Made by a program: the position numbers and the translations under genes. A model generated the notes under the pieces. It was not told the DNA's origin, did no database searches, and saw only the letters and a program-made list of their open reading frames with translations. From Haliotis cracherodii (lineage: Eukaryota): a stretch of DNA of 64,000 bases. The stretch's first letter is position 1. Every line of letters begins with the position of its first letter. Location: positions 31,682,001 through 31,746,000 of the forward strand of contig NW_027266308.1 of the NCBI RefSeq assembly GCF_022045235.1, in the 5' to 3' direction. Positions 2,914-59,562 of the stretch are shown here, in pieces.

Positions 2914-5900
2914 CCACTGGGACAAAACACCTCTACATAACTGAGAATGAGAACACTTGGTGGGAAGCTAGAAAAAACTGCAAAACGGAGCTTCAGAGTG
3001 ATCTGTACATTGTTGATACAGAACCCCTTCCTTCAGTCCTGGATGAGTTTCTTAACAACAACACATTCTACTGGGTAGGAGCCATGAGGTATTCAACATG
3101 GATATGGACAGGTGACTACTATGACGTGGAATCCATACATATGACAGTGGTGACAATAATAACACTCGTGTATGCATATATGTATATATGTTACAAGAAA
3201 TATGTATCATCAAGGAATATGTGTATTCCCTGAATATATCTAATGTCTGATTCACTCAGGGAAATTACATAATCCCTATTTATTCTGGTATTATACATAT
3301 TCCCTGATTTAACATCATGTTTCTTAGACATATTCCCTGAAATTACTTTTGAGGCTGTCATTTTGTCAAACTTGATATAAAAAAATCGAGAAGGCAAATT
3401 TATTTGACATGATAACAAATACCTTTTACTTAACTTAACAATTAGTCTTAACTGTAATCAAAACATAGGATAGAAATGAGGTTAAAATACTCAATATGAA
3501 TGCAACACCTCCCTCCTCTCAAGCATCACTGGATTTATATCTTTGACGCAGTCGCAAAGAATAAAGACAAGATTTACTGTAGTTGTTGTAACAACTCATG
3601 GTTATCATTGCCTTCAAAGAATCAGTGTTAGCATATGAAGTACAAACATATTTTAAAAACAAACGAGTTTGCAGCTGCAACAACTTGCGAAATTCAGGGT
3701 ATAAAACTGCCGACATTATGTATTACCTCACATTTTCAAGATGGAGTTAAAGGAAAATTTTCGAAAAAAAAAGTACAAGAGCTATTGTTTGTTAAGTCTA
3801 TCCTATGTTTGATGTAGCATTGTTTTGATTACAGTGAAGAGTCTGACTAATTGTTAAGTTGAGTGAAAGGTATTTGTTATCATGTCAAATACATTTGTCT
3901 TCTCATAAATAATTTGTTTTTTTTTAATCAGGTTTGACTATATAAGAGCCTCCAAAGTAATTTCAGGGCATATGTCTAAAAAAACCTTGATGTTAAATCA
4001 GGGAATATGTATAATACCTGAAATTTTTCGGGATTATGTATATTCCCTGAGTAAATCAGACATTATATATATTCCCTGAAAATTTCAGGGATTACACATA
4101 TTCCCTGATTATACATAGTCCCTGTAACATATATATCACCAAGGTGATCGTAAGAGACGACCAAACATATCGGGTGGTCAGGCTCGGTGACTTGGTTGAT
4201 TGCGTGTCATCGTACCCCGACGGCGTGGATCGTTGCTTACAATATCGACTACTGGATTGTCTGGTCAAGACTCCTTTATTTAAAGGCCGCAGTTGTATAT
4301 TTTATATTGCTGAGTTAGGCGTTAAACAACAAACAAACAATGAACATGTACTCGACTCTCTGGTTTTCTCTTTCTAAAGATGTTGTATATTTGTTTGATA
4401 TTACAGCAGATGATACCCCGCTTTACAGTTATGTCGGTTACACTAAACCAGGTTCAAACCCCAAATACTTGCTCGATAACTCTGTGTACGAGTGTCATCT
4501 TGCATGTAGAAACAAGGACAGAACGTTTGGGCTGAGCGTAAGATTCATCTTTTTTGTTTTTGGTTCGTGTGTCACTAATACTGTTTAAAGAAATACATTT
4601 AATGGAACTTTTAGCTGCGTTGTCATCCTTTCATAAGGGAACGAAACTGATAACTGAAGCATGAGAAAAAACCCAATGACTTCATTATTATACAAAGTAT
4701 CGTTCAAGCAAAGCACTATTTTATTAAGAGAATCGCCTTTCGATAAAATTACATCAGGTGTCATAAAGGTTTTCTGACTACAGTTAATAGTTAATGTTTC
4801 TTGTTGTATTTAGGGCAACAAATGCTATTGTCATAACGAGACACATGCAGCTACAGCTCCCACTGCAGTAGGGATGCAGTGTCCGGGCAACCTAGATGAA
4901 ATGTGTGGCGACGAAGATGTGATGTCAGTCTACACACTTGGTGCTGGTATGTGCGTCCCAACACGGTGTACACTGCCTGTATAGTTGTTACAGCGTCATG
5001 GTGCTCGTAAACGCTTGTTAGAGATTTTTTTAACTATAATATCTATTTCGCGCCAGTAGAAGGATTACGTATATGCTATTTTGTTGATATATCGTTTCCT
5101 TAAAGTTATGACAATGATATTTTGTTTCAGGAAACTTTCGATTTACACCGACACAACATGGGGCATGTGCTTATGCGATGGTCAATGACCCAATCTCAGT
5201 ATACCTCAACCATTACCGCAATTGTTTAACACAAAAGAGGATAATCCCATGTTATGAAAACAGTAAGTATGGACTAGGTCATACACTAACTACAAATCAG
5301 TAACCACTATACATCATATCGACAACACAAGTATTTTTTTCAATTTCGCTTGCTTCTTCAAAACGAATATTCTATACAAAGTGAAAAGAATTGCATGTAA
5401 ATTAAAAAAAGACCTAATGGGGAAGACTTCCAAAACTTGTTAAAAATTCAATCAGAATCATAGACCATTACTTTCAAGATCTAGTGTGAGGTAGTGTGAG
5501 GTTTGCATGATGAATATTCAATGAATATTTCAAACATTTTCTCCTTTCCCCTTTCTCCCAAAATATCGTTTTTATGCAGATTTCATAGTATGCCATTTGG
5601 TTAGGGTGATAAAATTAGGGTAAGGGTTACCTTTTCGCATTGTATTATGGATGAAAAAACTAACGCAGTCTGTATTGGTGGCCAAACCATATTAACTCCT
5701 GAACCTGAAAGGTAATAAACATAGACGCATCTAACTAAAATATCTCGAAAACTGGCTCTGATAACATAAAAACCCGACATAATCTCAATCTGGAGTTTTC
5801 TGATTTTTCCGACTTTGATCATGAACTTGGCAAAAAAAATGTCCCAGTCAACCAGACACGCATATGGGGGTTTGGGAATGTAGCTATGTTCTTCAATCAG

Positions 5901-8900
5901 TCAGTCCATGTACCACCCGTGTGTCATCTACTTTGTTTAGTTAATGTCAGCACTCACATTATGCTACATGTTCTCTATATCTGTGTTGTAGTATCGCAAG
6001 AAAGCAACTGTAATGGGGGCGTTTGTGTTTCCATACAAGACATCCAACAGTCATGGGTACAGGCGTATGACAAATGTCCTATAGTCAAACTGGACAATTC
6101 TACCACATGGTATCTCAAGAAACACATTCATTCAGGAGATCGGATTTGGATTGGTCTCGCATTTAAGGTCTCAAGGAAATGGATCAATGGTAGGTTCCCC
6201 CAGTTTTGCTCTTGTCCACCTGTCAATGTTAACAGTAAGATCATGGAACATGCAATTTATAACAGAATTGTATATTTATTTCAAATTATTCTTGGGGGGT
6301 ACATATCTTGACATATATGAACAACAATGCGGAAATTGCAATAAAACTCCTCAAGGTTCTTCTTACATTATTTTGACATAAATATGAGAAAGAAACAGGA
6401 CAAAACATTGCATTTGTTTCTTAAATGACAAATACAGTCTCTGATCTGTATCTTAATAGTGACAGATTTAGAATCTATTGTTATATGACGTCATTTAGTT
6501 TATGACACCATGTCGGTTGGATTGACTTTGATGCACCCACTGACGCCATAAGGCCAAATCTAACCATCAACAAAGAAGGCGTTCTTCTAAGCAGTCAAAC
6601 AACTTTCGGAGGGGTGGGGTGGGGGAGGTTACTGGGTAGAGTGTGAGATGTCCCACTTGCTCGGCAGATCAGAGAATTACATTTATTAACCTTTCTCAGA
6701 GTGTATAAAATGTGATTCTTGGTCTTATTATGTTCAGGACAATATGTTCAGTTCAGAGAACGCTACCGATATTGAAATGTTCCGGGTGAGTGTACATACA
6801 CATTATAGGTGTAAATATTTATGTATGGTAGCAAATAATATATTCCTTAAAGTTTGCAATGATTTGTGAAACCACAGTTATGTGTATCTGTGATATGTGC
6901 CTTAGATACGAATAGAATGCATTTGTAGAATGAGCCGGGGACAGTCTAGATATATACTCACAACAATGCACAATGACGTTTTCATCGCGGTTTAAATCAC
7001 TTTTCTCTTCCTATTCCCGTTGGCTTTCCTGTTATGGTAACTATATAGTTGTAGTTGTACATTACTCCGACCCTGTGAGAAAATAATAAGATGCATATCT
7101 AGTATAAGCCACATGAACAGCCGACAGACGCAGGAACTATAACAAAAATATATTTGTTAAATTGAGGATTTGTTTAACAGACAAAACATATATTTTAAAT
7201 ATTAGTAGATCCCAAGTGGTGTTCAAAGATACGTGGATATCATTGGACTCTTATGAATGGGGATAGCTAGGATTACAGAAACACACAAATAATTGTGTTT
7301 CCATGGATTTAAAGTTTTTTTCTAAAGTTGTTGTTAGTTTTGAAGCCTATTCTCAAAGGTATTAAATGCGTTTTCTATTTGGCCAGTAAGCCGCTAAGAG
7401 TTACTGTGAGTAACGTTTTACCATTTGTTGGGATAGATCGGTTTACATAAATTTATACGTCTCGAGTTTGGTTCTAAAGTTGTTGTTAATTTCAAAACCA
7501 ACTCCCAGAGGCATTAAATGCGTTTTCTATTTGGCCATAAGTCGTCAAGAGTTACTGTCTACTGGAAATGATCGAAAAGTGACGTACTAAGGGCTTGATG
7601 ATGATGATAATGTTGATGTTGGAGATTTAACGAGCACTTTCGGTTGAACCGATTTCGCACTCGGATGTTCGTAAAGTGCTGTGACATTGCGCTTTTATAG
7701 ATAACCCTGACGTCACGTCAATCACGTAACAAAACTGACAGAGACTTATTCGATTGACGAAAAACACATAAAAATGAAATATAATTAGGGTGAAGCGCTT
7801 TAATGCTTAATTTCACTGTGTTTGAATACATTTCATTCACGTTATCAGAAAATACCCTATGGCGACTTCCGACGAACTTCGCAGTCGATATGTTATCGAC
7901 CCAATGAACAGTTCTCTCGTAAGCCTAGGTCGTGAGAATTAAAAAGTTATCTCGTAAGCTTAGGATGTTGGAATTAAACAGTTCTCTCGTAAAGCTGAGA
8001 TGTCAGAATTAAACAGTTCTCTCGTAAGCCTAAGATGTGGGAATTAAAGAGCTCTCCTGTAAGCCTAAGATGTGGGAATTAAACAGTTATCTCGTTACCC
8101 TAAGATGTTGGAATTAAACAGTTCTCTCGTAAACCTAAGATCTGGGAATTAAACAGTTCTCTCATAAACCTAAGATGTGGGAATGAAACAGTTCTCTCGT
8201 AAACCTAAGATCTGGGAATGAAACAGTTCTCTCGTAAACCTAAGATCTGGGAATGAAACAGTTCTCTGGTAAGCCTAGGATGTGGGAATGAAACAGTTCT
8301 CTCGTAAGCCTAAGATGTGGGAATTAAACAGTTCTCTCGTAAACCTAAGATGTGGGAATGAAACAGTTATTTCGCAAACCTAAGGTGTGCGTATTAAACA
8401 GATTTCCCGTAATCATAAGGTGTGGGAATACAACAGCTCTTTCGTAAGCCTTAATTGTGGGAATTAAGTAGCTGTCTCATAAGCATACTGTATGGCAAAT
8501 TCATTTACATCAATTAATGTTCATCAATCCATTAAATTGCCAGGTTTCCGATACATATGTTTATATAGCTACAAAACAACACAAATGGTTTGCTAAATAT
8601 GATATGCTAAAATATTTTTTTAAAATGACAACTTGGAGATCGTCGATTACAATCGTAATTCAGCATGCGTGCATACATAATAACCTGATGAAAAATAGTC
8701 CTCATACGTCGTTACAAACAATAAGGAACAATAACCTGTGACCTCCGGGGCCAGCTCGCATGATACTGCAGCGTGTTACTATTATAGAGTGTGTTACAAA
8801 GCATTCATGCATGGCATTGAAGCAGTATGAATGAGATCATTAGAGGATCAAGTTGATTGTTTATTAGTATATTAACGACTTTTCTTCACTTTAAACTTGA

Positions 8901-11580
8901 TTGGAATATACATGGTCAAAGATGGTACTCATAAATCCTACAATTACTTTTCGTACATGTATGTTTCAAGGAAAAGACGCCAATGGATATGAGGATTACT
9001 ACCCGTTCATAAACTCACCTATACAAATGTGCCTTGCTTTGAAAAACGATGGAGCAAGGAAGCTGTACTGGGTACCGTGCTCTCTACACCTTAGTTCTAT
9101 TTGTGAAGGTAATAATTATGAGAAACTTGTACCATATGTTCAAGTGGTTTTATATTATGTAAACAATTGACTTGCCTTTGCATGTGTTTTGAGAGGTGCA
9201 GGATACGCTAATCTTTTCCCTACCACCTGGCATCATCACTATTTGGTAGTGATTCTTAAACACATGCTCATGATATACTGGGACTCGTACAATGGACTCT
9301 TCTTTTTGCAGACTGAGGAAAGGGCTCTGTCGCTTTTATTACCAAGATAATCAGAATACCATTAAGTAGAGCATGTGTGATCATGATTAAATGATAAAAC
9401 ATCATTTCAATATAAGTAGAAAGGCCACCAAATATTTTCTCACGGTTAAGGATGCGATTATTTTGTGTATGATAACGTCTATTCTGGATCTGTTCTCACT
9501 CAAAGTCACTGTCAGTCTTGCCACAGTTTTGCCACAAATCCAAATGACCTGTCCCTTTAATATATCTTCCTTTATCTAAATTATGCCAGTGAGTAGATGC
9601 TTTTTCCTGACAAAATGGTTGGCTTAAGGCCCTACCAGATGTCAACATTTAGTATGTGAGGGTAGCATTCTTCGTAAGTCTTTGTGGGTCCAATAGATAT
9701 GCCCATCAACAAATACATTCTTAAGAAAGGCTCTATTTCTTTGACAACAATGGAAAGGTATTCCTGCAATGAATGTGACATAGTGTTGTATCATTGGCAT
9801 AACTGTCGCTATGTATCTACTTGCCGCATGTATTTCACACTTCCGCAGTGGTATTACTGAACATTCTGTGACTATAATTGATCTCATGTGTTTATATCCA
9901 GTTTTCTTTTACATCCTCATCTTAGCTCCAACGTCGTCAACAACACTAGGATCGTCAAACGGAGGTATTTCTACTGAGGGTCAAGTCTCAAACCAGGATG
10001 ATGGAGTTGGTCAATCTGATACACAGACTGGTAAGCATCCACAACAGAAACCGATCCCTATCATTGTCCCATAGATATCCTCAAAGCAACAAAATTAAAA
10101 TAATGTTGAGTAAATTTAACACTTTTATTAATTTGTACAGTATATGTTTATTTCTAGGTCTGTACATAGGACTGGCTGCAGGCAGTTGTATCCTTTTGCT
10201 GATTATCATCGCTGTAGTCTGCTTTGTGCGAAGGTGAGATGTCAAACAGGCACTTCTTTCAACATTTTACAACTACTATTGATGCAAAATGTTAAGTGTA
10301 AAGGTGTCTTTCCATCTTTGAAAAAGTGATTTCTGAAATAAGACATGTTCTATATATATCATTTATCTTCCTTACATTTTATCCTAAAAAAGTCATGTGT
10401 CCATCATTTATCCTTCTGTAGCCTGCATCAATGCGTCGGTACTGTACATCAAAATTGATATGTTACACATCACGTGCTAAGTCCAGAAGAAAACATTATA
10501 AATAAACACACAGCACTACCTTAGTGATTCACACAGCAGTTACTCACAAAACGATCAGCAGTGAACAGGTAGGGTGGTGACTTATGCAGTGTTAACAGTC
10601 ACTACTGTGACAGCTGACCAATACAAAAATACTCCCCTTGGCACGCTTCATGGCCCTGTGGGGAATCCCTGTAAGAGGAGCAAACTAAAATGGGGATCAG
10701 ATGTCAGGCTCTATTGTTTTTTATATGTCAAATTATTCAATATGGTTGCTCATGCTATTACTTACTAATTTGCCATGCCCAGACATGTAATTTACAGGCA
10801 GCATTTATATAGCTTTTTGCTGTCTGCGGCTTTCAACAATATGCACTCACTCACAGAGGGTGCAGAAGTGCCAGAAACGTATGAACGTTGGTGGAAATCT
10901 CTAGGTTCTTCGGCACGATAGCTATGTTCGTGGGTTTCACTAAAGTAGTATATGTCAAGCCGTGCATCATGTTGGACTATCCTCCTACATCAAACTGACA
11001 AGCAGTGATATAACTATAACGGTTATAACGCAAACCTACTCCCTAACTATTGGAACGTATTAACTATTTATTTGTTACATATATCATTTTGATAAGCCTA
11101 TTTTACAGGCGACGAAAAATCCGTTTGGAAATAACAGATGAACAGAGGATCTTCAACACGGCCACAGAAAACATGACCTATGATATCGATGTACCAAGAG
11201 ACAATGAAGCAATTTCTGTTTCCCCAGACTTCACTCCTGTCCCAAAGGCGACAGTTAATCCCACCACCCACACTGAGAAAGCCTACATGAACCATCCTGG
11301 GACTAATGTTGAGAGTGAATACAACTATGACCACGTGGATGCGACAGAGGGAAACTACGACACCGTGCAGCAAGGGGGAAACGCGAGAACGGTAGATGAG
11401 TCGTATAGTCGCATAGGCAAGATAAACAAGAAGTTTGAAGAAGGTGCCTATGATACCACAAATACTGGGTTGGTTGTGAACAGGTTTGATGACACCTACA
11501 GCCATACGTCTGAGTCCGATAACAAAACTTCTGATTACTGTAATACAAGATCTGTTGTCAGAGATGATCTGATGTGTTAA
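2914..11580 (+). CDS. Receptor gene 1: CTLD-half/WSC/CTLD-half/CTLD/stalk/TM/Tyr-rich tail, 5' leader exon missing
   Basis: Phase-compatible GT-AG exons 2914-3111, 4407-4537, 4814-4946, 5131-5262, 5992-6189, 8971-9108, 9926-10030, 10158-10233, 11109-11580 form one open frame of about 526 aa. Motifs include TWWEARKNC..YWVG..WIW, SVYECHLAC..GLSGNKCYC..CPGNLDEMCG..SVY, WIGL, WVPC..ICE and TM IGLAAGSCILLLIIIAVVCFV. Exon-by-exon homology to genes 2 and 3. Confidence 0.85.
3184..4134. mobile_element. Foldback/MITE-like element with ~190-bp TIRs in a gene 1 intron
   Basis: 3184-3370 is the reverse complement of about 3935-4134, with internally repetitive TTCCCTGA/TCAGGGAA units and TA-rich flanks. 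The orthologous intron in genes 2 and 3 is only about 120-140 bp. Confidence 0.7.
4147..4340 (+). mobile_element. SINE-like repeat, family C (GTCGTAAGAGGCGAC...GGCGTTAAACAACAAAC)
   Basis: Homologous to 26397-26640, 57693-57888, 21890-22085(-) and 63795-64000(-). Confidence 0.7.
7909..8485. repeat. 35-bp minisatellite, about 16 copies, in a gene 1 intron
   Basis: Unit CAGTTCTCTCGTAAACCTAAGATGTGGGAATTAAA repeated head-to-tail with 35-nt period (e.g. 8119, 8154). Confidence 0.95.
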
Positions 11581-16130: not shown

Positions 16131-16311
16131 TTAAGCTCATGGTATATGTTATCGCATAAGGAAAATTCGATACTATGATATTGCAATTCACCGAACAAAG
16201 AAGTCTTTCACAGATTATGCGTTACAATAATCACCTCTTTCAACCTTTGTGAGCGTTCTTCCCTGTTGGGTACACCACAACGAGTAGATGCAAAACACAC
16301 AGACCGGAGAT

Positions 16312-19300
16312 ATGTGGACTGCGAGGCTGCTTGCCTGTTACCTGCACTGTGTGTATGCAACTAGTGTCAACATATGTAAGTAAACGTCTCCACTTACTGT
16401 AGTTGTTATTCCTTTTAATGTCAATTTTTCATTTGAAGAGTTGTTATGTTTACTTTAATATGTCAGAAATATCTCAACTTGGATTTTTTTATCCGAATAT
16501 GTGGAACCACAATGATTACTAGGGGGTGTCTAAGCCTTCAGTTTCGAAACTGTCATCGTGTTAACATGCATGCAAAAGTCAGGGGTCTGTACTTCGAATT
16601 ATGTAACATTTTCCCTTTTCATCTGTGTATGGCATCTCTTTGTTAGGGCCCACGTGTCACGGTATGATATTGAATTTCACATCTGAGAATATAGTATTTT
16701 TTAAATCAAATATTCATTCAATTCATCACGCACTGTCATTCCTGTCCTTTCTCTACGTGTCGCTCCAGTGTGCATTTGGACGTGAGTAGGAATTCGTTGT
16801 CATTGTCGCTGTCTATGATTCAGTCTAAAACAGTTATTCAGTTTATAATATACATTGCCATTGCAAAACTGTATTTTCTGTAAGTGTCTCAGTTATTTCC
16901 ATTTATACCTTTGAGTGTACTTATGAACACTATGCCATCCACGTAAGTGAGTGAGTGAGTGAGTTTGGTTTAACGCCGCTTTTAACAGTATTCCAGTTAT
17001 ATCACGGCGTGTCAGCTTAATGTGGGAGGAAAGCCCGACGTGATGCAGGTCTCAGACGTTTACCACTTCGGTGAAACCCACGAGCACGGGTATGGTGCTG
17101 ACAAACCTAGAAACATAATTGGGGCAAACCGGGATTCGAACCCACAATCCTAGTTTTCTGGCGTGCCCAAGGGACGCAACTCTGCACAGCGAATCGCGGC
17201 GCCTTAGACGACTGGGCCAGCCATCCACGTAAGGAAGTAACACAATTTACTATGATGTGCTTATAAGGTAATAGGCTTTTTATCAAGGAAAATCATAATT
17301 TAGATGGGAACATTTGTTATCAGTAACAGTAAATTCATATCGAGTTTGCTGGCTAGTGAACATGCTTTGATAGGCATCGCGTTCCTAATATTACATTGAA
17401 TGGTTTCAACTGCAGTCACAGATTTTCCTCAATTCACAATCTCGGACAAAAGCTTTACAGCCATATCAAACAGCTATAAGGAAGTTATTTATCCAATCAG
17501 GACGATGATATGGTCATAAAACTGCCAGTCATGTATATCTATTTATATAATATCGAGAGCTGTGTATTCCAAAACGAATGTCTTCCCTTACATGGCAGAA
17601 TGGCATACTGACGTCAAATCAAGTGACATCCGGTGAGATATAAGCTGAGCTCGATAACTATTTATCAGTGAATGTTACCGGAGGAAGAGTACCAAGAACT
17701 GGATAAGTGCTAAAGTATCGGTTCCACGGTATCTTCATTTTGATGAAAACGATTTAACGTTGTTATGCCATTTGTCTTGCAAACTCACTGAGTTACACAG
17801 TAGGGCAGTGCTGCACGGGAATAAGATTCATCAATATGTCCTCATCTGATTCTACTCTGTTTGAAAGAGTTTCAAGGTCATATCTGAATTTGTAACTACA
17901 ATTGGAAAACCACTTAATGCAATGCATTATTTTTATAGAAGACCCATAACAGAACCAATTTAAAGGACCATTGTATAATACTGTGACTCATTTGAAGCTT
18001 AATATTATGTAACGTGTATACATTTTACACACAGTGACGTTATGTTAATTGCCAAGCGAGGGTATTCTTATTTGCGGGGCACGGGTGGTCTGAGCCGACG
18101 CAATTCGCTGTGCAGATCTGCGTCGCTTTGGCCCGCTATAAACCTTTATTGTGGACTCCCGCTTCGCCCTGATCACTTCGGGTGTTCGTCCACTATCAAG
18201 CTGATACGCCGTTACATTAATGGAATACAGTTCAAAGCGGCGTTAGATGAAACCCACTCACTCGCTCTGTATTTGATTAAGATGCGATCCGATCCGATCC
18301 TTTAAACATGAGCTAGATATTGTAAATGTAATTAATTGACTTTAGTGAAATGTTACTTTTGGGTGTATGTTCCGGTACATTGTATAAAATGTCAGTGAGC
18401 CCGTATCATTATTTCACTTCTATATTATTCCTTTTATGACAACTGAGTTCACAATACTGTACTATGCCTCCTTAATTTGGAAGTTTCAAACGACTTCAGT
18501 TTGGTTTTAAATCTACTTTCTAAATCTATAACACAGTGGTCGTGTTGCCTAATTACGCAGAAGAAAACAAAACATGATAAAAGCGTAAAAACTGAGGTGT
18601 GGTAGAAAGAACTCCAACTTGAGTAGTAAGAAATAAAAGTTTTCAGATCAAGGTCAACATAAATCAACAAATGTGATATATGTAAAAACACAATTGCAAT
18701 CAATTTATATGAGACAACACTAATTGACATCGGATAGGAAAGCCTTAAATGGTGTGGACCGATAATGGATACGTTACTAAATTATATGTCATTAATCATT
18801 TGCAGCCACGGAGACAAAACACATCTTTATAAACGAGGAGGAAAACAACTGGTGGGATGCTCGGAAAAACTGTAAGATGGCGCCGGAGAGAGATCTGTAT
18901 ATTTCTGATGCAGAGTTCCTCCCTCCACTCGTGGATGAAAACCTACACAGCAACACTTCCTACTGGGTAGGAGCCATGAGGTATTCAACATGGATATGGA
19001 CAGGTGAGTCTGTAGAAGTAGTTCCCACATCTAAATAGAAAATAGATATGCATAAAAGCTGTGTATGCATTTATCTTAACTTATAGTTAATCTGTTGTTG
19101 ATGCCTCTTATGTATGATGTTACAGAAGATGGTACCCCGCTCTACAACTATAATGGATACAATTATACAACTCCAGGAAGCAGCCCCAAAAGCAACTTGT
19201 CTTACAACTCCGTTTTCGAGTGTCACCTCAAATGTCCATCCAACCGTATAGTAGGCCTGAGCGTAAGGAGAATGCATGTTTTTGGTGACACAATACTATT

Positions 19301-22300
19301 GATCCCAAAGTGGTAAAAAGAATTAAATTACGTATGTACATTTACTTCTGTTTTGAAAACCTACAAACGACACACGAAGGACGCATGAGAGAAGGATACA
19401 GATGTGTTGAAGTAATGTTGTACAAACACATCATATGCTAATAAAAGAACCGCTGTGCAGTAAAAAGATCATAATTTCCTATCGTAAAGTGTTTTTTTAT
19501 GACAGGGATACTCAACTCATCATTGTTTCGTTATTTATAGGGGCAAAGGTGTTATTGTCTCGAAAATGCGCATACAGTAACAAATACCAGTGCAGGTGGG
19601 ATGCAGTGTCCTGGCAACCCAGAAGAAATGTGTGGCAACGACGATGTCATGTCAGTCTACACACTAGGTACTGCTGTGTGCGCATTTACACGTGTATTAC
19701 ATAAAAAAATCGGAGAGTATTGTTATAAGGTTATACTCAAAGGCAACAATCTTCTTGTGTTATGTGTGTTGTCACTTTTATCTATGTTAGAGGGGTTCAC
19801 ATTGATATACTGATGGTCAGGACTCTTAACTTCCGGTTTCTCTTAGTTTGTTTTCTTGTCAACATTATAGCCATATGGTAATATAGTTTACAGTAACGTG
19901 TAATGTACGTAATGCTCAGGATGTAAACGATATATTGAGTCATAAATAACTTGTGTATGTTTGTGTGACTGTATGTTACTTTCGCCTTTTTGTAGGAAAC
20001 TTCAGCTTTAAACCCAGGAGGACTGGAGTATGTGCTTATGCAGAAAAAAATACAACTACAATCTCCATAAAACCAGACTATTACTACAAGTGTGTAACAC
20101 AAAGGCGAAGATTTGCATATTATTCCCACAGTAAGTATGGCCGACGTTGTCGTCTGCTTCACACAAGTTTGATCACATCCCTCTCTTACATAATCAGTAT
20201 TTCCTGCAGCCTGAAATTATTTACCAAAGGGAATTCAACAAATGTAAACTTTAATACCCCAATATAAACCTAAACAAAACTACTCATGTCAACCCAAGCT
20301 CGTAACTGTCACGTGCACATTGCATGGTCCTGCCAAGCACAGAAAAATAATCGCGTTCTGGCATTAAAACAAATAAATACAGTAACTAGAGCAGCAAATA
20401 CTGGTTTCAGAATGTATTTCAATTGTTGACGTTTCCGAATGAACCGAAACTTCCTTCACGCAAACAGTCCACGATAAGTAACACAATACACATCTACTAA
20501 ACATAGAGATCTTGTATTGTCACGGACTGTAGTAAATTATTACTATGATTAATTTAACAATATTCGTATAATCTCATGGATTGTGTTTTTCGATGCCTTC
20601 TGGTTTTACCTACGACGTTATTGGATATCGTAATTCATATGTTTGTAGATACTCACCACTGGAACTGTAATGGGAGCGTTTGTGTGTCGGCGGGAAACAA
20701 CTCGCAGTCATGGATCAACGCTCATAAATCAAATGATCTGATCAAACTAATCTCCTCCACTGCAAGAGATATCCGCAATATTCCAGGATATTATAAATTT
20801 TGGATTGGGCTTGTACTAAAATTCACAAGGAAATGGACTGATGGTACGTTTCTAATACCTGCCAGGTTTGAATGGTATACTACTGAAAAATGAAACGCAT
20901 ATCTGAATTCAACACATTTTATATAAATAACTAATTCATTTGGTGATAAATGTGTCTCACATAATTATTGTCTGTGTATGAAGAATTCATTAATCATTAC
21001 AAAATTAGCAATATCACTGGTCACAAAGCTCAAAGATGTAACACCTCAATATCGTGTATGACCACCATTGGAATCAATAACAACTTGACACCGTAAAACC
21101 ATCCACATGAACAGTTTGGGGATGTTATTCCACTCAAGTCCTGCAATGTTTCAGGATCAGTGTTTGGGTTCAGATCTGGTGATGTATAGGAATGTTGTTC
21201 TAGGCTACTCAGTTTTGAAACAAGAGTTGTCGTCTTTGTCATGTTGACAAGCGACGTAACATTGGTTCATGAATGGAATGACATGTGTCTGAAGTGGAAG
21301 TTGACAATAATGGCGTGTCAGATCAAAGCCACATGTGTGAGCTCTGGTTTCTACTTCCTTCAATGATTTCTGACGATTTGGTCGCAAATACTGCGCAGAC
21401 CTGGAACAACAGAAGTGGTAGAGGGGGCCTTTAAGAAACGGTTGCGGAGGCGAGGTACGCGGACAAAATGATCCTGGGTGGACGTGGTCACCCGTGGTCT
21501 TTCAGAACGAGGCAAGTCACACGCTCTTCCTTGAGCCTGGTAACGGTGCCAAAGTAGTCCTACGGTGATCTGCGAAACGATCTGTAGCGTTCCCCAGCAT
21601 CCAAACAGACAATGGCATTGTTTCGTACATCCTCATCATGTCCTGACGTGACTTCCAACGTTCACCGCTCCTCGGGCCCCGCACGTTTGTTTTGTGAGAT
21701 TCCATCTTTATGATGCTACTTTGGTTCTGACACAAACTATGTGTATTCGGATGGTGAATGAAAACCACTATGTGTGCAAACCACGATATGGACATTGCGA
21801 AACCATTTATTGATAATGATACCCAACTCTAAATAGCTTACTTAGTTTTTTATTTTGGAATATTAGTGTTAAGAGACATGGAACGGATAAAAAAGATTTA
21901 CGCCACACTCAGCAATAGTACAGCTATCTGACAGAGGTCTGTACATAATCCAGACAACCCGGTTACGGATGTCATAACCTTTGAGATTGGGATACGATAA
22001 CATGCATCAACCAGTTCTGACCACTCGATCCTGTTAGTCGCCTCTCACCAGAAGTATGTGGTGCTGAAGACCAATTCTAATCCCGAGTGAGTGAGTGAGT
22101 ATGGTATTACGCCGCTTTTAGCAATATTCCAGAAATATCACTGCGGGGGACACCAGAAATGGGCTTCACAAAAAATCACTAATTTCAGTATAGCACTATT
22201 GAAAATGACACTGGAAAATGGCTAAATCAAATGGCTTAATTGTATAAATGGCATAAATGATTTAGTAATATTATGAATTTCAAGGCTTTTAACATATGCC

Positions 22301-25103
22301 AATGTTCAGCATAAAGTTGTGACAAATGCGGGCTACATATTCTGAGTAAGGGAATATCGTTAGTCCGGAAACTCCACCTTGCAGGGACACTGGGGCACTT
22401 GCTAATCCGGACTATTTCAGTGGGAACGCAGCAGCCAGAAATTACTTGGTTTCACCGTATAGCAAATAATCAGCTATTCCGTTCACAACCATCATACAAA
22501 TCTCATTCAATGGGAGGAACAGTGTGTGCTACTATAACGAATGTTAAAACTTCTCTCTTCCGTGGCATTACAAAAACGCCTACAGCAGGATGTAGCAGGG
22601 TCTCTGATTTTGTTAACTGAATAAAGTACCTTTAGATTATGACAAATAACCAGATACCACAGAACCAGGCTTAATCATCTATTTACTTTAAGTGACCATA
22701 ACTATGAAAATAAAAATGTTATTTTGCAGCTTATTGCAATGTTCACTTAATGGTTAGTAGCTTAAACTTATATGATTCCAGGACAAGAGGTCTATGGCTC
22801 TGGTGAGAACTTTCCGCTAATTAGTTCACCAACAACAACATGCCTAGCTATGAAAAACAACCATGGCATATGGAAGCCGTACTGGATACCATGCAATTTG
22901 CGCCTTGCATTTATTTGTGAAGGTAATAGGCATGTAAGACGAATATGTTGTTTTACACAATGGTAATTATAAGTGGATTCTCTTCAATCTTTACATTCAA
23001 TGCTAAGATAATGTTAAAAGATATGACTATAATACATATCTCTTCAGCTGTTTTTCCAAACAATAAATTAAAGAGATGGGTTTCTTTTATCAGATCTTAT
23101 CAGAGGCCTTCTCTCTTTCATTTACTTACCCCCTCCCTCCGTCTGAACTACACGTGCTGTAATTACGTACATTGTGATTTTACTTCGCTAGTTGAAGGAC
23201 CCACAGATAACCCTACGTCTACTGTTGGAAGTTGTTATCATGTACAAATGTAGGGTTTTTTCTTTAGTGATAAGATATCCCCCAAATGAATCACATCAAA
23301 CTTCGTCACTAATGTGAACATTTGCAATGACATTTACCGATTATTGGACATTTGTTTAAGGATAGAATTTCATTCTTAGCTAAAACAGTAATATCACAAT
23401 CAACATCGACTTTAACGTCTACATCAACGTCAACGCCGTCATCAACACAGTCGCCGTTGTCAGGGGGAGATTCCACGGATGTTCCTTCCCATCCCTCTAC
23501 TGGCAAGCAGTCAGATGTAGTTGAACAAGCTGGTAGTCAGAGAGGTAAGTATCTACTACAGTCGCCGAGGGTAGCCCTGTCACGCAGAAATACAGGTTCG
23601 AATCCTAATATTTGGATATTGTTAAATGTGGTGTAAAACCATTTTCTTGTGTACGTTTAACACGTTTAATAATCCTTTTAACATACACATTTTTCTATAT
23701 TCCCAGGTGTTATCATAGGACTGGCTATCGGCAATGCGGTTTTCTTACTGATAGTCATCGGTTTAGTGTTTCTTCTGCAAAGGTGATCTTCTTAGCAGCA
23801 CTTCTATAAACAGTGAAAAAAAAACCATTCTTGACATGTATATTGTTAACTGCTTAACTGCTTACATTTATGAAGTGGCTTTCCATCTTCGGATCAACTG
23901 TTTGTGAAATAGCATCTCCTAATATGTAGATGTACAATTGATATCGAGCAGCATTTAGATAAGGGTCACGATTGCCGTCAGTAATATGACAGTCACGCGA
24001 ACTCGTTTTTATTCCAATGTGGATTTCTCTCAATTCCGGCCGAGATAACCTGCGGGGTTGAGGCGACCTGAGTGACCCTATTCATTCGTGTGTTTGGCCA
24101 TTTTGCTTTAAAAGTGTTTCGAGGATTATTTCAAGTTGTAAAATATGACATCACATCAAAGAGTACAATTAATCTATTTTGGTTGGAACTTATTAACCAC
24201 TTACTGTGCTAAATAGAAACAATCAAGTAAACATATTTCATTTAAAATTACGATTCGGGGCATTTTATACATCACATTAGAGCATGTGGCTAATTATGTT
24301 TCAGGCAACGCAAATTCCATTTGGCTAGAAAAGATACGAATCAACAGATGGTCTTCAACAGGTCATAAACATAACTAATGTAAAGTTACTATTAAGGGCA
24401 TGTACATCACATTCAATCATGTTGCAAATGCTGTTTCAGACAACGGAAACTCCGTTTGGATAGAAAAGATACGAATCAACAGGTGAACCTCAACCCGCCA
24501 ACAGAAAACACGACCTACGACGGTCTCGATGTTCCGAGAGACAATGGCGCATATTCTGTTATAACCCCAGACACAATTGACGGGAAGCCATTCACTCCCC
24601 CTGTTCCAACAGTGACAGTAAACCCAAACACTCACACTGCGAAAATCTACGTGAACCATCCTGAGACTGATGTTGAGAAGGTGTCCAATTCCCTCTCAAC
24701 GCCCAGTAAACAACACACCGACATGCCAAGAGGAAAGCCCCACATGCATCTCTCTGGACCCGACTACGACACAGCAGAATGTATTCTACAGTCGAGAAGC
24801 GGAGATGGAAGGGACACTGGACTGGATAGATCTGCAGGAGGTACTGATGTAGCCATCTCCGAGGGTGTTCAGTACCACATCCTCGAGAAGCGCAGCTCCA
24901 CGGGAAGGGATGAAAGTGATGCTGGTTTGTATGACCACACGGAAGCGGCAGAGGGAAACTACGACACCACACGGGGGAAGGCCAGAAATGTAGATGACTC
25001 GTACAGTCACATTGGCGCGATAGATAAGGGGTTTATAGAAGGTGACTATGATGTCGCTGGCGCTGGGCCTGTTGTGATCAGGTTGGATGACACCTACAAA
25101 TGA
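16312..25103 (+). CDS. Receptor gene 2: signal peptide/CTLD-half/WSC/CTLD-half/CTLD/stalk/TM/ITAM+ITIM-like tail, about 633 aa
   Basis: Exons 16312-16375 (MWTARLLACYLHCVYATSVNI, donor GTAAGT), 18806-19003, 19126-19262, 19541-19667, 19996-20130, 20649-20843, 22782-22922, 23380-23544, 23707-23782, 24440-25103 total 1902 nt in frame. There is an alternative in-frame ATG at 16288. Confidence 0.85.
16945..17220 (-). mobile_element. tRNA-derived SINE, family B, in gene 2 intron 1
   Basis: TSD GCCATCCACGTAAG on both sides. The paralogous empty site is near 60228. Confidence 0.85.
17490..17733 (+). promoter_or_regulatory. Conserved intron-1 block with a CRE palindrome (candidate enhancer)
   Basis: Alignable with about 32670-32975 in gene 3. 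TGACGTCA is present in both (17609-17616, 32818-32825). Confidence 0.3.
20950..21850 (-). mobile_element. Decayed Tc1-like transposon in a gene 2 intron
   Basis: Minus-strand RPRVTT (about 21485-21500) and SPDLNP (about 21165-21185) motifs, frameshifted. Absent from the matching gene 3 intron. Confidence 0.7.
21890..22170 (-). mobile_element. Family C SINE-like copy followed by a family A SINE 3' fragment
   Basis: Homology to other copies in the window, and a GAGTGAGTGAGT tail at 22085. Confidence 0.65.
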
Positions 25104-25581
25104 GGCCACTAATTAGCATAACACATGATCTGCCGTCAGAGATAACTGAAATCGTGGTAATGATGTATTTGCTAGCAGAGATCACGATGGTACAGGTAGG
25201 AGTGTCTGGTCGTACAAAGGGAAATACTTTTAGGACATGAGAAATATAACTGTACAGTAAGATGGGATTATCTTTCCAGTGTTGCTGGATAAAACTAGTT
25301 TGATTGAAGCAAAAGTCTCTCTTTACAGGTCAAAGAGCCATATCTTGACGGAAGTTACGTAACAATTATGGAATAAATTTAAGTTAGTACTTTTAAGGTA
25401 AAGAGTGGTTAAAGTTAGTTTTTTTTATTAGTGATGCAGTTGAACATTGAACTATTACAAGTAAAAACGAATTTCTCAAAAGGTTGTCTCCTGTAGGAGT
25501 CAGTTAAAACAAAACTTCAAAAAAAGTGAAGTGGTTAATGCTGACGTTAAGTTCTTTCAATCTTTATATATCTTTTCATTG

Positions 25582-25862
25582 CGGGGGCACCGGTGGCCCA
25601 GTCGTATAAGGCGCCGCGATTCGCTGTGCAGAGTTGCGTCCCTTCGGCACTCCAGAAACCTATGATTGTGGGTTCGAATCCCGGTTCGACCCGAATATGT
25701 TTCTAGGTTTGTCAGCACCATACCCGTGCTCGTGGGTTCCCCCTGAAGTGGTAAACGTCTGAGACCTGCTTTCCTCCCACATTAAGCTGACACGCTGTGA
25801 TATAACTGGAATACTGTTAAAAGCGGCGTTAAACCCCACTCACTCACTCACTCACTCACTCT
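25582..25862 (+). mobile_element. tRNA-derived SINE, family B, downstream of the gene 2 stop
   Basis: TSD TCTTTTCATTGC and (CTCA)n tail. The empty site is in the gene 3 paralogous region near 43244. Confidence 0.85.
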
Positions 25863-26396: not shown

Positions 26397-26640
26397 CCCG
26401 TGAAGATCCGGGGTAGAATAACTCTTCGGCAACCCGTGCTGGCAGTAAAAGGCTACTATGCTTGTCGTAAAAGGCGACTAACGGGATCGGGTGGTCAGGC
26501 TCGCTGACTTGGTTGATGCATGTCATCGTATCCCAACTGCGTGGATCGATGCTCATGATGTCAGTCACAGGATTGTCTGGCCGAGACCGCTGTCATATGG
26601 CTGGAATATTGTTGAATGCGGCGTTAAATAACAAACAAAA
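26397..26640 (+). mobile_element. Family C SINE-like repeat, near full length
   Basis: CCCGTGAAGATCCGGGGTAGAATA...GTCGTAAAAGGCGACTAACGGGATCGGGTGGTCAGG...GCGGCGTTAAATAACAAAC. Confidence 0.75.
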
Positions 26641-28280: not shown

Positions 28281-29410
28281 ACTGACTTTGCCAATCCGAG
28301 GAGACATGATTCATATACATAAAGAAACAGATCATCAAGACGCCTCTTACTGAAAGTAGAATCAACTGTATCCAAGAAACCCAATTGGTCTACGCTACAA
28401 CTTACGTTACTCATGATCTGTATTATCCCTGTGTCATGCATCAGTACAAAACATAGAACTGATTGTTCTATTAACCAATGTGAATATCTAGGCATGTCGA
28501 CGAAAGCCTCTTCAATACATTTCAAAGTAAAGTCACCAAACCAACTTTGCAATCCATATGGGTTCGAATTTTTTTATACTTTGGGGCGTACGAAATGACA
28601 AATGCTTGACCAAAATGTTTTTGGAAAAACGAAACTAGCGTAAAACAAACGATAAAAACGACAAGCAAAATTGTCAAAACGAAATATACCACCACTGGGG
28701 GGATTCCCATTACTGGGGTTAAAACGGGTTCCCGGTGTTTGACGCGCTGTGCAATTTCAACGATCATGACGATCGGGGCGACGCCCAGTCTGATTTCTTA
28801 TGCCTCGGAATTTTAAATACAATCTTTCTTTTTTCTGTCTGATCATCCATTTATTTACCATGTCCACAACTTATGTCACATATGTAAAAACACTGAAAGC
28901 ATAGTAATGCCCATCAAACAATTTAAAAACACTGAAGATGCCTTCATTTCTTACTCAGGGGAGTAACAGGGCCGAGAGCAGCTGGTATTTTATTAACCAA
29001 ACAGGTTGTTAGTAACAAAACAGTAGTTAATTGCTATATTATTCATTCGCAATGTCAAGATCAAAAGTCGTTTCACATGTTTAACAATGTATACAATGTT
29101 GTTATTTTTGTAGGATTAACGGAAGTAGCAGAAACAGTAATGTGTATAACGGCTAAGAATCACAAGATATATATATATACGCAACAAACGTATCAGCCAA
29201 TGAAAACGGTTGTCAACTCTGCGACGATAGCTTTAGGTCACGCCCCCAATTAGGTTTGTTGTGGAAGCAGATTACAGAGTGTGTGATTGGAAATTTGATT
29301 TGGACATTTGAAAACATTTTGTACGAATATTATGAAAGTCGATTTTCGAAACATAGTTTCCTTTCACTTTACTTACCCTTTAAGACGACCACGTCTTGTT
29401 TTCTTTCGTA

Positions 29411-29670
29411 AGTGAGTGAGTGAGTTGGGTTAAATACTGTTTTTAACAGTATTCCAGTTATATCACTGCTTGTCAGGAGGAAAGTCCGATGTATTGCAGG
29501 TTACAACTTTGAAACCCAGGAGCACGAGCATGGTGCTGGCAAACCTAGAAACACAATTGGGGAGAAACCAGAATACGAACCCACAATTACAGGTTTCTGG
29601 TGTGCCAAAGGGTCGCAGCTCTGCACACCGAATTGTGGTGCCTAAGACGACGACTGGGACACACGTGACC
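29411..29670 (-). mobile_element. Degenerate family B SINE
   Basis: GTGAGTGAGT tail and internal homology to 1776-2050. Confidence 0.7.
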
Positions 29671-31270: not shown

Positions 31271-31623
31271 AACAGACCCTCCTTATTTTACTGACTTGTC
31301 ACAGGGAAACATATTGCTCAAATGACTCGTGTACTGTGTATATACCTCTATGACATTTAATGTCCTCAAGGAAATATTTCACTCTTACTCAATTCTTTGT
31401 GAGGCTCAAATCATATCAATCAACCCTCGTAACTAAATTTAGCTAATCGTATATGTTATCCTTTAGGGAAAACTAGGTGCTATGATTTTGCAATTCATCG
31501 AACAAAGAAGTCTTTCACGGGTTTTGCTAATATAATAATCACTTCTTTCGAACCGTTGTGAGCGTTCTTCTTCCGTGTTGGGTACACCACAACGAGTAGA
31601 TGCACAACACACAGGCCGGAGAC

Positions 31624-34600
31624 ATGTGGACCGCGAGGCTGCTTGTCTGTTACCTGCACTGTGTATATGCAACTAGTGTCAACATATGTAAGTAAACGTA
31701 TTCACATGGTGTCCTTTTAAGTCATTTTAATGTCTTTACTTTTAATGTGCTTTATATCACAACTTAATACCTATGGTTTAAAGCCAGAGATATCTTGGAC
31801 ATGTCTGGGCCTTTAGTTTGGAAACTATTATCGCGTGGAATTACATGCAGTATTCCCGCAGCTATATATTGCAATATGTGACCGCAATAGTTAAAATTGG
31901 TCAAGAAACAACATCTCGGTGTATGACATCATTCTTTAAGATTTTGTTTATACATTCAATTTTTATAACGATCTATGTGTCACGATATGATATTGTAGTT
32001 CACATATGTGAACGTAGTGTTTTTATGTCAAATTTTGGGCATTGTACGGTTGACTACATTCTTTCAATTTATCCCGCACTGTTTCGCCCCAGTGTGTCTT
32101 TGGATATGTCTGTTGAAATTCAGTGTCTTTAACGTATATCTTTTCCTCATTCACGTAAGTTAACACTAATTTCAATACACGGATGGTATGAAATAAGGAA
32201 TTATCTGTAAATTGACACGGTGTCCTGCATTCATTCAGACGATAACGACATCAGCTATTTACTGACTACATATACTACAGCGATTAAGTTGATAATGATA
32301 TATTGTGATGTGCACATTTTTTGTATTTCATCAGTATATAATTGGTGTAGGCTTATGTAAAGTCTCGTACAGGAACAATGTGTGATTAAGTAAATAACAA
32401 TTATTCCGTTTATGATATACCCTGTCTAGCTAAATGTATTTTCTGCATATGTCTATTAAGATTTTGAGTGTACTTTGGGGATTCTGTGCGATCGACAAAA
32501 GGAAGTAGCACCAACTGTTAATATACTGACATTATGTTTAAGTTTCGAAAAGGTAATACCAGCGTTTTTTTGGTGCATTGATTTGCTATAAGTACGGAAT
32601 ATTGTAATATGTCACAGATTTACCTGGATTTTCAATCCCGGACAAAAATTAAACTGGCATAAGGAATTTATCGAATCAGGACGTTGATGTTCTCATAAAA
32701 CTCCCAATCATGTATCGCTATAGAATTGATACATAGTGCTATATTTTCAGTTCGGTGAAAATGAGAATAAAATGACATATGCAAACGTTAGCATATATAA
32801 AGTGAACATAGACGTACTGACGTCAACACAGAATGGTATATTAATGTCAAATCAGGTGACATCAAGTGAAATATTAGCTGAGCTCCATTTCTAATGTATC
32901 AGAAAATGTTATCAAAATGTATCAAACAATACCAGGAACTGGGTTAGTGCTACAGGATTGTGTTCCACGGTATCACCTTTGTTCAAATACATCCTTATTT
33001 TAAAGAAATCTTTTTTTAAATGACAACAAATACTGAAACAACTGACTTTGATATTTGTGCATAGAGTTAATGGGCTCCTAACATAATTCGATATCCTTTT
33101 TCTAGATATGCGTTTTTGTCTGATTTAGTAATGAAACACCAGTCGATCGAATGTTATATTTGGTCCATGCGTGATAAGTATTGTATTGTGCAAACGTACT
33201 TTGATCACGTTCAATGTACAGCAACATATCATGTACAAAGTATAAACAGTTAAGCGTGTTTTTATAATAATAGACAGTTACAACAAATGTATATATACAC
33301 CAGATCAAATATATAGCGTCGTATATCCGATCAAAAGATATCAATGATTGGCAGTTTTATGAGCATGTCTACATCCTATTTGGACGAAAATACCCCTTAT
33401 GGTTGTTTAATATGATTGTTTGATTTGTGTCCGGTATTGTAAATTGAGGTTAATGTGGAACATATGACAACAGACTGTAATCACCACAAAGCGTTACACC
33501 CAGCGTTATCAAGCTATTTTACACATTTTCTGACTTTGCCTCATCTCAAATAGAAAATTTACACCAATGTCATGCTGTGCCTTCTTTGTGTCTCGTCGAC
33601 CCCCCCATGTTCGGCTTGATGAACGTTCTTCTGTGACAATATCCCCTTTCTGTTTGTTATAAAAGAGACAAAACCATTCCCATAATAATAAGTAATCTGC
33701 GCTTATATTAATCCATGGTTCGACTCCGACTATCTCAAATGCATGTGTTTGTGAATCACAATCAAATAGTGATGATACTATGCTTACAAACAATATTGAA
33801 ACAATGTTTTATACATCGGCAGAATGAAAACAAACAATCAAACGTGGTTTTTCAAGTTTAATGTGAAACAACTCCTCCAATTAGACGATGATTTACCTGA
33901 CCGTGGAATGAGTTTTCCTTTTTCGCACAGGTTAAAGGTTCGTGATTGGCATATCCAAGTGGATAATAATTAGGCCGGGGCATGTCTTACAACAAGCCTG
34001 TAATCTGTGGCAAACTAGAAGCAACAAAACCCTTTCCATATTCAAAAGAATTTTCTGCCCAAAGCAGAGTCGATTGTATGATTCCGACTATAACCATGTA
34101 TATAATTGTGAATCACTTTAAAATAGTGATGATACCAGGTTTTCGCGTAAAAAAGCACGTTAAACGGCCATGAATGGTTGACGATTGTCATTAGGTTTAG
34201 TTTCACTAATATAATATCAGTATGGGTGATTTATGTGTTCATTTAAAATGTCTAGTCAAACAGAATCATACAAACTTCTTTATTTTAATCATTTGCGATT
34301 ACTTTATACAAAGGACAATTCGATCAGCGGTCTCATAAAGAAAATGTAAGTGAATATGTTGTTCGTAAAAGGTGGCATTTTACACGCGAATGGACTCATT
34401 GTAATGACAAAGGGATACGTCTCTCTTACGGCCGACGAAAGTGACACGATTTTGACAGAGGTAATAATCGAAATAACCCTCTTTTCATCAATTGTGTTTT
34501 ACACCTGCCTTCTAAGTAATGAACGCTAAAACTTGCATCTTAGCAGAACCGATGCGCCTGCACATACACACACACGCGCGCATACATATGTACTACTGAT

Positions 34601-50899: not shown

Positions 50900-51088
50900 T
50901 TTAGCTCATGGTATATGTTATCGCATAAGGAAAATTCGATATTGCTATGATATTGCAATTCAACGAAAAAAGAAGTCTTTCACAGATTATGCGTTACAAT
51001 AATCACTTCTTTCGAACCGTTGTAAGCGTTCTTCTTCCCTGTTGGGTAAACCACAGCGAGTAGATGTATATGCACACAGGCCGGAGAT

Positions 51089-59357: not shown

Positions 59358-59498
59358 ATTTGAACAGACCATAGTACAAAAGATACATCAACAGGATCTG
59401 GGATACAGTCAGTTTTCCGCTCTGTTTTCCGAATCTGCGTTCTACTTCCCTGTTGGGTTCACCACAACGAGTAGATGCATGGCACACAGGCCGGAGAT

Positions 59499-59562
59499 AT
59501 GTGGACCGCGAGGCTGCTTGTCTGCTACCTGCACTGTGTATATGCAACTAGTGTCAACATAT
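59499..59562 (+). CDS. Leader (signal-peptide) exon of a fifth receptor copy, downstream exons not seen in the window
   Basis: MWTARLLVCYLHCVYATSVNI plus phase-1 donor GTAAGT. The intron-1 start is homologous to genes 2 and 3 up to about 60250. Confidence 0.65.

Follow-up and report, generated by a model that had tools for sequence, protein, structure and literature searches.

A WSC domain probably set at the long-loop position of a C-type lectin fold, and a candidate tandem domain swap, in a family of abalone receptor-like genes

We analysed a 64,000-nt stretch of the genome of the abalone Haliotis cracherodii (hereafter the window; contig NW_027266308.1, positions 31,682,001 to 31,746,000, G+C content about 0.38), which contains three tandem paralogs, all on the forward (+) strand, in which one half of a C-type lectin domain (CTLD) runs without a break into a WSC domain. 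The ectodomain is encoded by six exons, here called A to F, whose products would follow each other as CTLD N-half (A), WSC domain (B and C), CTLD C-half (D), CTLD N-half (E) and CTLD C-half (F). The WSC domain very probably occupies the long-loop position of a CTLD, which holds for both of the main topologies weighed below. In the reading that we favour, with a probability of roughly 0.6 and on the basis of structure models, the native fold would be a tandem domain swap, with an outer CTLD formed by exons A and F, a central, circularly permuted CTLD formed by exons D and E, and the WSC domain as one of the two crossover connections, placed on the face where CTLDs normally bind their ligand. 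The outer CTLD would be locked by a disulfide between the cysteines C1 of exon A and C4 of exon F, and the permuted one by a disulfide between C4 of exon D and C1 of exon E where these cysteines are present. The odds are about even that such a disulfide-locked native swap, with the WSC domain in the crossover hinge at the former sugar site, has also been conserved since before the split between gastropods and bivalves.

The three genes would belong to a family of mollusc type I membrane receptors, in which the composite ectodomain is preceded by a signal peptide and followed by a Ser/Thr-rich stalk, a single transmembrane helix and a tyrosine-rich tail.

Position of the WSC domain in the lectin fold

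The exons were searched one at a time, and public proteins matching the gene models were then found for gene 1 (P0036 and P0027) and gene 3 (P0003). Gene 1 is represented by three isoforms, P0036 (XP_071080159), P0027 (XP_071080160) and P0035 (XP_071080161), and its exon coordinates were refined with RNA contigs and splice-site reading. Exon A of this gene (2914–3111, 198 nt, phase 1-1) encodes the CTLD N-half, with strand beta1, helix alpha1 bearing the cysteine C1, helix alpha2 and strand beta2 with the WIGL-like motif YWVGA, and reaches as far as W-I-W-T. Exon B (4407–4537, 131 nt, phase 1-0) completes the CTLD hairpin (DDTPLYSY) and passes directly into the N-half of the WSC domain, the C-half of which (CYC...CPG...MCG...SVY) is encoded by exon C (4814–4946, 133 nt, phase 0-1). 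Exon D (5131–5262, 132 nt, phase 1-1) resembles a CTLD C-half with strands beta3, beta4 and beta5 and the pattern C-x18-C-x8-C-Y-E. Exon E (5992–6189, 198 nt, phase 1-1) encodes a long-form CTLD N-half, comprising the C0/C0' hairpin, helix alpha1 with its C1 and the segment from WIGL to KWING, and exon F (8971–9108, 138 nt, phase 1-1) a canonical CTLD C-half (C..L......W..C......ICE). Exons A to D are bordered by AG..GT throughout. Owing to their phases, exons B and C form an in-frame cassette only as a pair.

Contigs assembled from four sequencing runs, which are probably RNA, show that a single transcript of gene 1 carries all six exons in the order A-B-C-D-E-F. The joints 3111>4407, 4537>4814, 4946>5131, 5262>5992 and 6189>8971 are all supported, with GT..AG introns in each case, and one contig of 2121 nt matches the gene with 0 mismatches. 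Of the gene 1 stretch, the contigs hold the exonic part only. Since these joints recur in the contigs of all four runs, the gene 1 transcript is real. This refutes the view that the architecture is an artefact of annotation or assembly, in which exons of separate WSC and CTLD genes were read as one. The long, repeat-filled introns of up to 2.8 kb are all that could be put forward for such an artefact, to which we assign practically no probability; against it, the exon order is shared by all three genes of the window, another 13 loci of this genome, three further Haliotis species and a scallop. The initial annotation of the window, made from the letters alone, had described a CTLD N-half running directly into a WSC domain and then a C-half-like exon in all three genes; exon reading, Pfam matches and profiles confirm this order, as does RNA for gene 1. 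It had also assigned exon D to a phase-1 exon of its own, which agrees with the phase 1-1 found here, and the WSC domain itself turned out to be split over two exons.

The lectin-fold identity of exon A is based on several comparisons. Exon A of gene 1 alone matches Pfam Lectin_C at positions 2–57 of 107 (E 1.6e-4, 22.8 bits with a cut-off of 22.6), and P0008 gives a match to the N-half of Lectin_C with an E value of 1.1e-5. The exon contains the signature of a CTLD N-half, namely the W-x-x-A-x-x-x-C motif of alpha1, the WIGL-type beta2 and the W-x-W hairpin, and a single-sequence search of the PDB matched it to NKR-P1B and CD94. The family profile matches CTLD N-halves with exon A and solved CTLDs with exons E and F (NKR-P1B, E 2e-6), and hhalign places exon A on the N-half of E+F with a probability of 84% (E 7e-6). 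Exons E and F of the paralog P0007 together match a complete Lectin_C domain (positions 3–106 of 107, E 1e-7); with this exception, Lectin_C is seen in the full family proteins as an N-half only. The C2/C3/C4 cysteine pattern of a CTLD C-half is present both in exon F (C-x15-C-x7-C-E) and in exon D of gene 1 (C-x18-C-x8-C). Several searches were negative: exon D alone had no match in Pfam or the PDB, its hhalign comparison with E+F was non-significant (E 0.27, with the best placement just before the beta3 cysteine), and exon A of genes 2 and 3 alone had no Pfam match. The WSC-less isoform P0004 likewise had no Lectin_C match at E ≤ 0.1.

In canonical CTLDs, the long loop carries the Ca2+/sugar site, marked by an EPN or QPD motif, with WND in strand beta4. 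As the WSC domain directly follows the W-x-W/DGTPLY hairpin, it stands at this long-loop position. None of EPN, QPD and WND was found in the ectodomains of 16 family proteins, as the initial annotation had noted for the genes of the window, and these domains are therefore not C-type lectins in the strict sense of Ca2+-dependent carbohydrate recognition domains.

The WSC domain can be identified from sequence and from its predicted structure. Exon C alone matches Pfam WSC at positions 47–81 of 82 (E 4.4e-4), and the family profile matches the whole WSC domain of Wsc1 (7pz2) with an E value of 9.8e-6. The abalone proteins score 20.5–26.7 bits, compared with a Pfam WSC cut-off of 27.8, and possess six of the eight conserved cysteines; the first of these, in Y-x-G-C, reads Y-x-G-Y. 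In the AlphaFold2 model of the gene 1 product (model 1, described below), the WSC segment comprises residues 88–175 and has a predicted local distance difference test (pLDDT) score of 75–80. The top Foldseek matches of this model are yeast Wsc1 (7pz2; E 6e-4, template modelling (TM) score 0.59–0.61, 91–94 columns aligned of 97–100 residues) and then the WSC domain of Kremen (5fws), and the segment as modelled thus takes the WSC (PAN/apple-like) fold. The initial annotation had further expected that scans with hidden Markov models would report WSC only. This is the case for P0001 in precomputed Pfam results; for P0003, these results list nothing. Our own scans recovered no more of Lectin_C than its N-half, so that such scans under-report the architecture.

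The junction between the CTLD and the WSC domain varies between transcripts. The start of exon B is a NAGNAG acceptor (cag|cag, 4404–4410), and use of the alternative acceptor at 4410 leads to isoform X2; because of this, isoforms X1 (548 aa) and X2 (547 aa) differ by one alanine at the junction. P0004, isoform X4 of another H. cracherodii paralog, joins exon A directly to exon D, with the WSC exons present in the gene, so that the WSC cassette can be skipped, at least in annotation.

Pairing of the lectin-fold halves

Two AlphaFold2 models were used: model 1 of the gene 1 product (17-row alignment, mean pLDDT 48.6) and model 2 of the paralog P0007 (18-row alignment, mean pLDDT 59). The predicted TM score (pTM) of both lies at 0.42–0.44. 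In model 1, exon A, the WSC domain and exon F are confident (pLDDT about 75–86), and exons D and E have a pLDDT of 27–50. After low-confidence stretches had been trimmed, VIA-align superposed known CTLDs on this model over residues 22..333, with 86–113 residues aligned; for 86–100 residues, the root-mean-square deviation (rmsd) was 2.0–2.6 Å and Z was 12–13.6. CD72, for example, aligned over 97 residues (rmsd 2.6 Å, Z 13.4) and NKR-P1A over 90 residues (rmsd 2.2 Å). Since only about 60 untrimmed residues of model 1 lie outside exon A and the WSC domain, exons A and F are parts of one domain in this model.

In model 2, exons A, D, E and F all reach a pLDDT of 79–87 (exon F has 77–87 across both models). 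Here, all 50 of 50 CTLD rows from VIA-align span residues 8..320, with 99–115 residues aligned at an rmsd of 2.2–2.9 Å and Z of 12–13.4. Foldseek, which aligns in sequence order, gave low-rmsd matches to half-domains only (52–58 columns), and its matches of at least 80 columns have an rmsd of 14–17 Å. As only half-domains match at low rmsd, the contiguous exons E and F do not form a conventional CTLD in this model. Judged by the aligned ranges, lengths and rmsd, the complete CTLD of both models is thus the one assembled from exons A and F. By the confidence values and by exclusion, exons D and E probably form the central, circularly permuted unit, in which a C-half precedes an N-half. Exon D, modelled in model 2 as three strands like beta3–beta5 of a CTLD, would probably be the first part of this permuted domain, and the insert within the outer CTLD would then probably consist of the WSC domain together with D and E.

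The distribution of cysteines offers a second line of evidence. In CTLDs, C1 of alpha1 forms a disulfide with C4 of beta5. A census of the 17 H. cracherodii loci and their orthologs, about 30 family members, showed that no member has lost C1 of exon A or C4 of exon F. Eight genes lack C1 of exon E, and five of these eight also lack C4 of exon D; a loss of C4 of exon D alone was never seen. According to trees of exons A and E, C1 of exon E was lost at least three times independently and C4 of exon D at least twice. In genes 2 and 3, both of these cysteines are absent, and pairing A with F and D with E leaves no orphan cysteine, compared with two for A–D and E–F. The losses therefore seem to fit disulfides A–F and D–E better than A–D and E–F. 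Exon E of P0004 and of P0021 contains additional cysteines, which are compatible with both pairings and were not used as evidence. In the numbering of P0036, the swap predicts Cys44–Cys330 and Cys216–Cys248, and the alternative pairing Cys44–Cys216 and Cys248–Cys330.

That alternative pairing belongs to a simple insertion, in which A and D form a first CTLD with the WSC domain in its long loop, and E and F an ordinary second CTLD. We regard this arrangement as a possible but doubtful one. It offers the most economical origin, as it would need only a tandem duplication of a CTLD and the gain of a WSC cassette. The end-to-end Lectin_C match of E+F in P0007 and the match of the family profile to solved CTLDs with E+F both agree with it. 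So do the correct cysteine spacing and the three predicted strands of exon D, its best, if non-significant, hhalign placement just before the beta3 cysteine of E+F, and the direct joint of A to D in isoform X4. However, both AlphaFold2 models assemble the complete CTLD from A and F, and in model 2 no conventional CTLD is formed by one continuous stretch, despite good confidence for both E and F. In addition, a simple insertion leaves two orphan cysteines in five genes, and the cysteines to which the lost ones would be bonded in this arrangement, C1 of A and C4 of F, were retained in all of about 30 sequences. Mean pairwise identity, which is 50% for exon A, 48% for the WSC domain and 36% each for exons D, E and F, does not separate the two pairings.

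Several observations weigh against the swap. The two models are not independent, since they share most of a shallow one-family alignment of 17–18 sequences. An ESM Atlas model of P0036, predicted from the single sequence, aligns over 207 residues with clusters of tandem-CTLD proteins at a TM score of 0.45, which we take as a weak hint of the conventional arrangement; the ESM Atlas feature matches are all ≤0.81 and consist of generic CTLD, PAN and WSC clusters only. By sequence, exon E followed by exon F reads as an ordinary contiguous Lectin_C domain. With respect to the cysteines, three genes keep C4 of exon D without C1 of exon E, the number of independent events behind the co-loss is small, and a cross-domain bond between two free cysteines is also conceivable.

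A further explanation is that exon A, exon D or both are decayed remnants outside any CTLD fold. The protein would then in effect consist of a WSC domain and one CTLD, with the nesting as a sequence fossil. Such decay could account for the missing Pfam match of exon A in genes 2 and 3, the lack of a significant match of exon D to CTLD C-halves and the pLDDT of 27–50 for D and E in model 1. It is improbable in view of exon A, which is the best conserved part of the ectodomain, with near-invariant W, C, WxG and WxW positions, and which is modelled at a pLDDT of about 80 within a full CTLD in two paralogs. Moreover, D and E are confident in model 2, and the arrangement has been kept between abalone and scallop.

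The initial annotation had placed the WSC domain in the long loop of a CTLD closed by exon D, and had proposed that a structure prediction should show CTLD secondary structure in the flanking segments. Exon A lies within a CTLD fold in both models, and exon D forms three strands in model 2. The long-loop position is likewise upheld by the place of the WSC domain behind the hairpin and by its fold in the model. The assignment of exon D as the closing half is not supported by the models, which close the CTLD with exon F.

Distribution, known systems and possible function

The H. cracherodii genome contains 17 loci with sequences like exon A, which form five clusters on a single contig. The 13 loci with the same exon order mentioned above are those of the 17 that were retrieved beyond the window. 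Relatives from H. rufescens, H. rubra and H. asinina are present in the databases, and searches to deepen the alignment returned only Haliotis relatives and few new sequences. An exhaustive search found a protein of the scallop Mizuhopecten yessoensis (P0019, XP_021372800.1) that hhalign aligns collinearly with the abalone profile across 300 columns (probability 98.4%, E 4.7e-15). Its WSC domain scores 39.7 bits at positions 3–82 of 82, above the Pfam cut-off, and has all eight cysteines. As the scallop shares the collinear architecture, the latter predates the gastropod–bivalve split, and a family confined to Haliotis is ruled out.

The best matches of the abalone lectin parts, in sequence as well as in structure, are CTLDs of the natural killer (NK) receptor type, such as NKR-P1, CD94, KLRG1, NKp80, LOX-1 and Dectin-1. 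Like the abalone proteins, these membrane receptors have tyrosine-based tails and lack the Ca2+/sugar motifs. However, they are of type II and have one CTLD that is not interrupted and whose long loop is short, whereas the abalone proteins are predicted to be type I and contain two CTLD equivalents in four pieces, with a whole WSC domain at the long-loop position. The abalone WSC domain shares its fold and cysteine-rich pattern with known WSC domains (yeast Wsc1, 7pz2; Kremen1, 5fws; PF01822), which stand alone or in tandem between other domains, unlike the abalone domain, which lies inside another one. The ectodomains of polycystin-1 and of the sea-urchin REJ proteins also combine WSC and CTLD in one extracellular protein. 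In polycystin-1, the two are separate beads on the chain. For bivalves, WSC has been listed among the extra domains of CTLD-containing proteins (PMC10140915).

A long loop that serves as a hinge for the exchange of parts is found in snaclecs (IX/X-bp) and BDCA-2, which are among the top structural matches of model 1. The crystal forms of BDCA-2 are swapped dimers. In these proteins, two chains exchange the loop only and each returns to its own core, whereas in the abalone protein a single chain would exchange whole C-terminal halves. A tandem domain swap has been defined as a central circular permutant combined with a terminal domain that has native termini (PMC6863430), and the predicted abalone topology fits this definition. 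The same review treats the swap as a misfolded state, with no experimental structure in the PDB in 2019. In contrast, the abalone swap would be native and disulfide-locked, with an extra domain in one hinge. Our literature search found no description of a WSC domain inside a CTLD, nor of a permuted or swapped CTLD pair.

The closest CTLDs, those of the NK-receptor types, bind their ligands without Ca2+, and WSC domains bind carbohydrates in other proteins. By analogy, the CTLD pair may act as a Ca2+-independent scaffold, as NK-receptor CTLDs do, that presents the WSC domain as the glycan- or ligand-binding element, and the tyrosine motifs of the tail may pass a signal into the cell as in pattern-recognition receptors. 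The likely role would be that of a surface receptor whose lectin-fold scaffold displays the WSC domain and whose tail transmits the signal. Both kinds of domain are widespread, and the lectin repertoires of molluscs are very large. A fast-diverging family of 17 genes on a single chromosome, for receptors with tyrosine motifs in their tails, seems a reasonable candidate for the sensing of pathogens or glycans.

These are known domains in a new combination, and the case would be more notable if the swap were confirmed. Domain scans miss or mis-describe the family, and surveys of mollusc immune receptors are therefore likely to misfile it. If the swap is correct, a topology hitherto regarded as a product of misfolding would be seen in a natural and functional protein, and a lectin fold would be shown to be able to pass ligand binding on to a domain placed within its loop. 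The family would also offer a system in which to study how an intertwined native state evolves in tandem homologous domains, how circular permutants arise from exon-sized half-domains, and how a binding module of foreign origin is recruited to the binding site of a scaffold fold.

Paralogs and surroundings in the window

Downstream of exon F, a tblastn search of P0036 on the window located the stalk exon of gene 1 at 9925–10032, its transmembrane exon at 10157–10234 (helix 366–400 in model 1) and the exon of its tyrosine-rich cytoplasmic tail at 11068–11577, all on the + strand. The tails at 24438–25097 and 42065–42769, like that of gene 1, contain several Y-x-x-[ILVA] motifs, and those of genes 2 and 3 are about 85–89% identical, much more than the ectodomains.

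Exons A to F of gene 2 span 18806–22922 (+): A 18806–19003, B 19126–19262, C 19541–~19667, D 19996–20130, E 20649–20843 and F 22782–22922. Those of gene 3 span 36818–40356 (+): A 36818–37009, B 37148–37278, C 38462–38594, D 38936–39070, E 39581–39784 and F 40213–40356. The H. cracherodii protein P0003 is the product of gene 3, with 100% identity in the protein search, and its exons map one by one on this gene at 96–100% identity. The donor of exon A in gene 3 is GC (37010–37011) instead of GT, and the annotated P0003 still uses this junction.

Outside the window, one paralog (L015, G000:C45:46972000-46981999, reverse strand) carries the A-B-C set twice before D-E-F, with A at 104 and 2960, B at 581 and 3400, and C at 2649 and 5248. 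The CTLD N-half and the WSC cassette thus each occur twice in succession, and the locus may be one gene or a partial duplicate. In the gene 1 orthologs P0001 (H. rufescens) and P0028 (H. asinina), exon E is missing and D is joined to F, which leaves P0001 with an odd number of ectodomain cysteines. All four H. cracherodii RNA contig sets of gene 1 include exon E, and its lack in these two proteins probably reflects annotation gaps or minor isoforms.

Near-identical signal-peptide exons (MWTA.LL.C.LHCVYATSVNI) were found at 16288–16374, 31600–31686, 51074–51151 and 59475–59561. Those of genes 2 and 3 lie 2.4–5 kb upstream of the respective exon A. Of the two further copies, one belongs to a "copy 4" that lacks an ectodomain, and the last probably to the next paralog past the end of the window; the signal exon of gene 1 lies upstream of the window.

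The intron between exons A and B of gene 1 contains a repeat of about 200–300 bp at 4060–4460, with a similar copy near 26455–26640. In all four RNA runs, its summed contig depth is about 9,000–55,000, compared with tens to hundreds for the exons, and the sequences next to it are of many kinds, which suggests an interspersed element that is both abundant and transcribed. Between the paralogs, open reading frames at about 36135–36400 (+) and about 590–790 resemble fragments of Tc1/mariner-type transposases, with motifs of the type ...DDNVRPHRA...DLNPIEHIW... Finally, tRNA-like short interspersed elements (SINEs) were found at 1770–2050, 17000–17220, 25580–25860 and 29410–29650.

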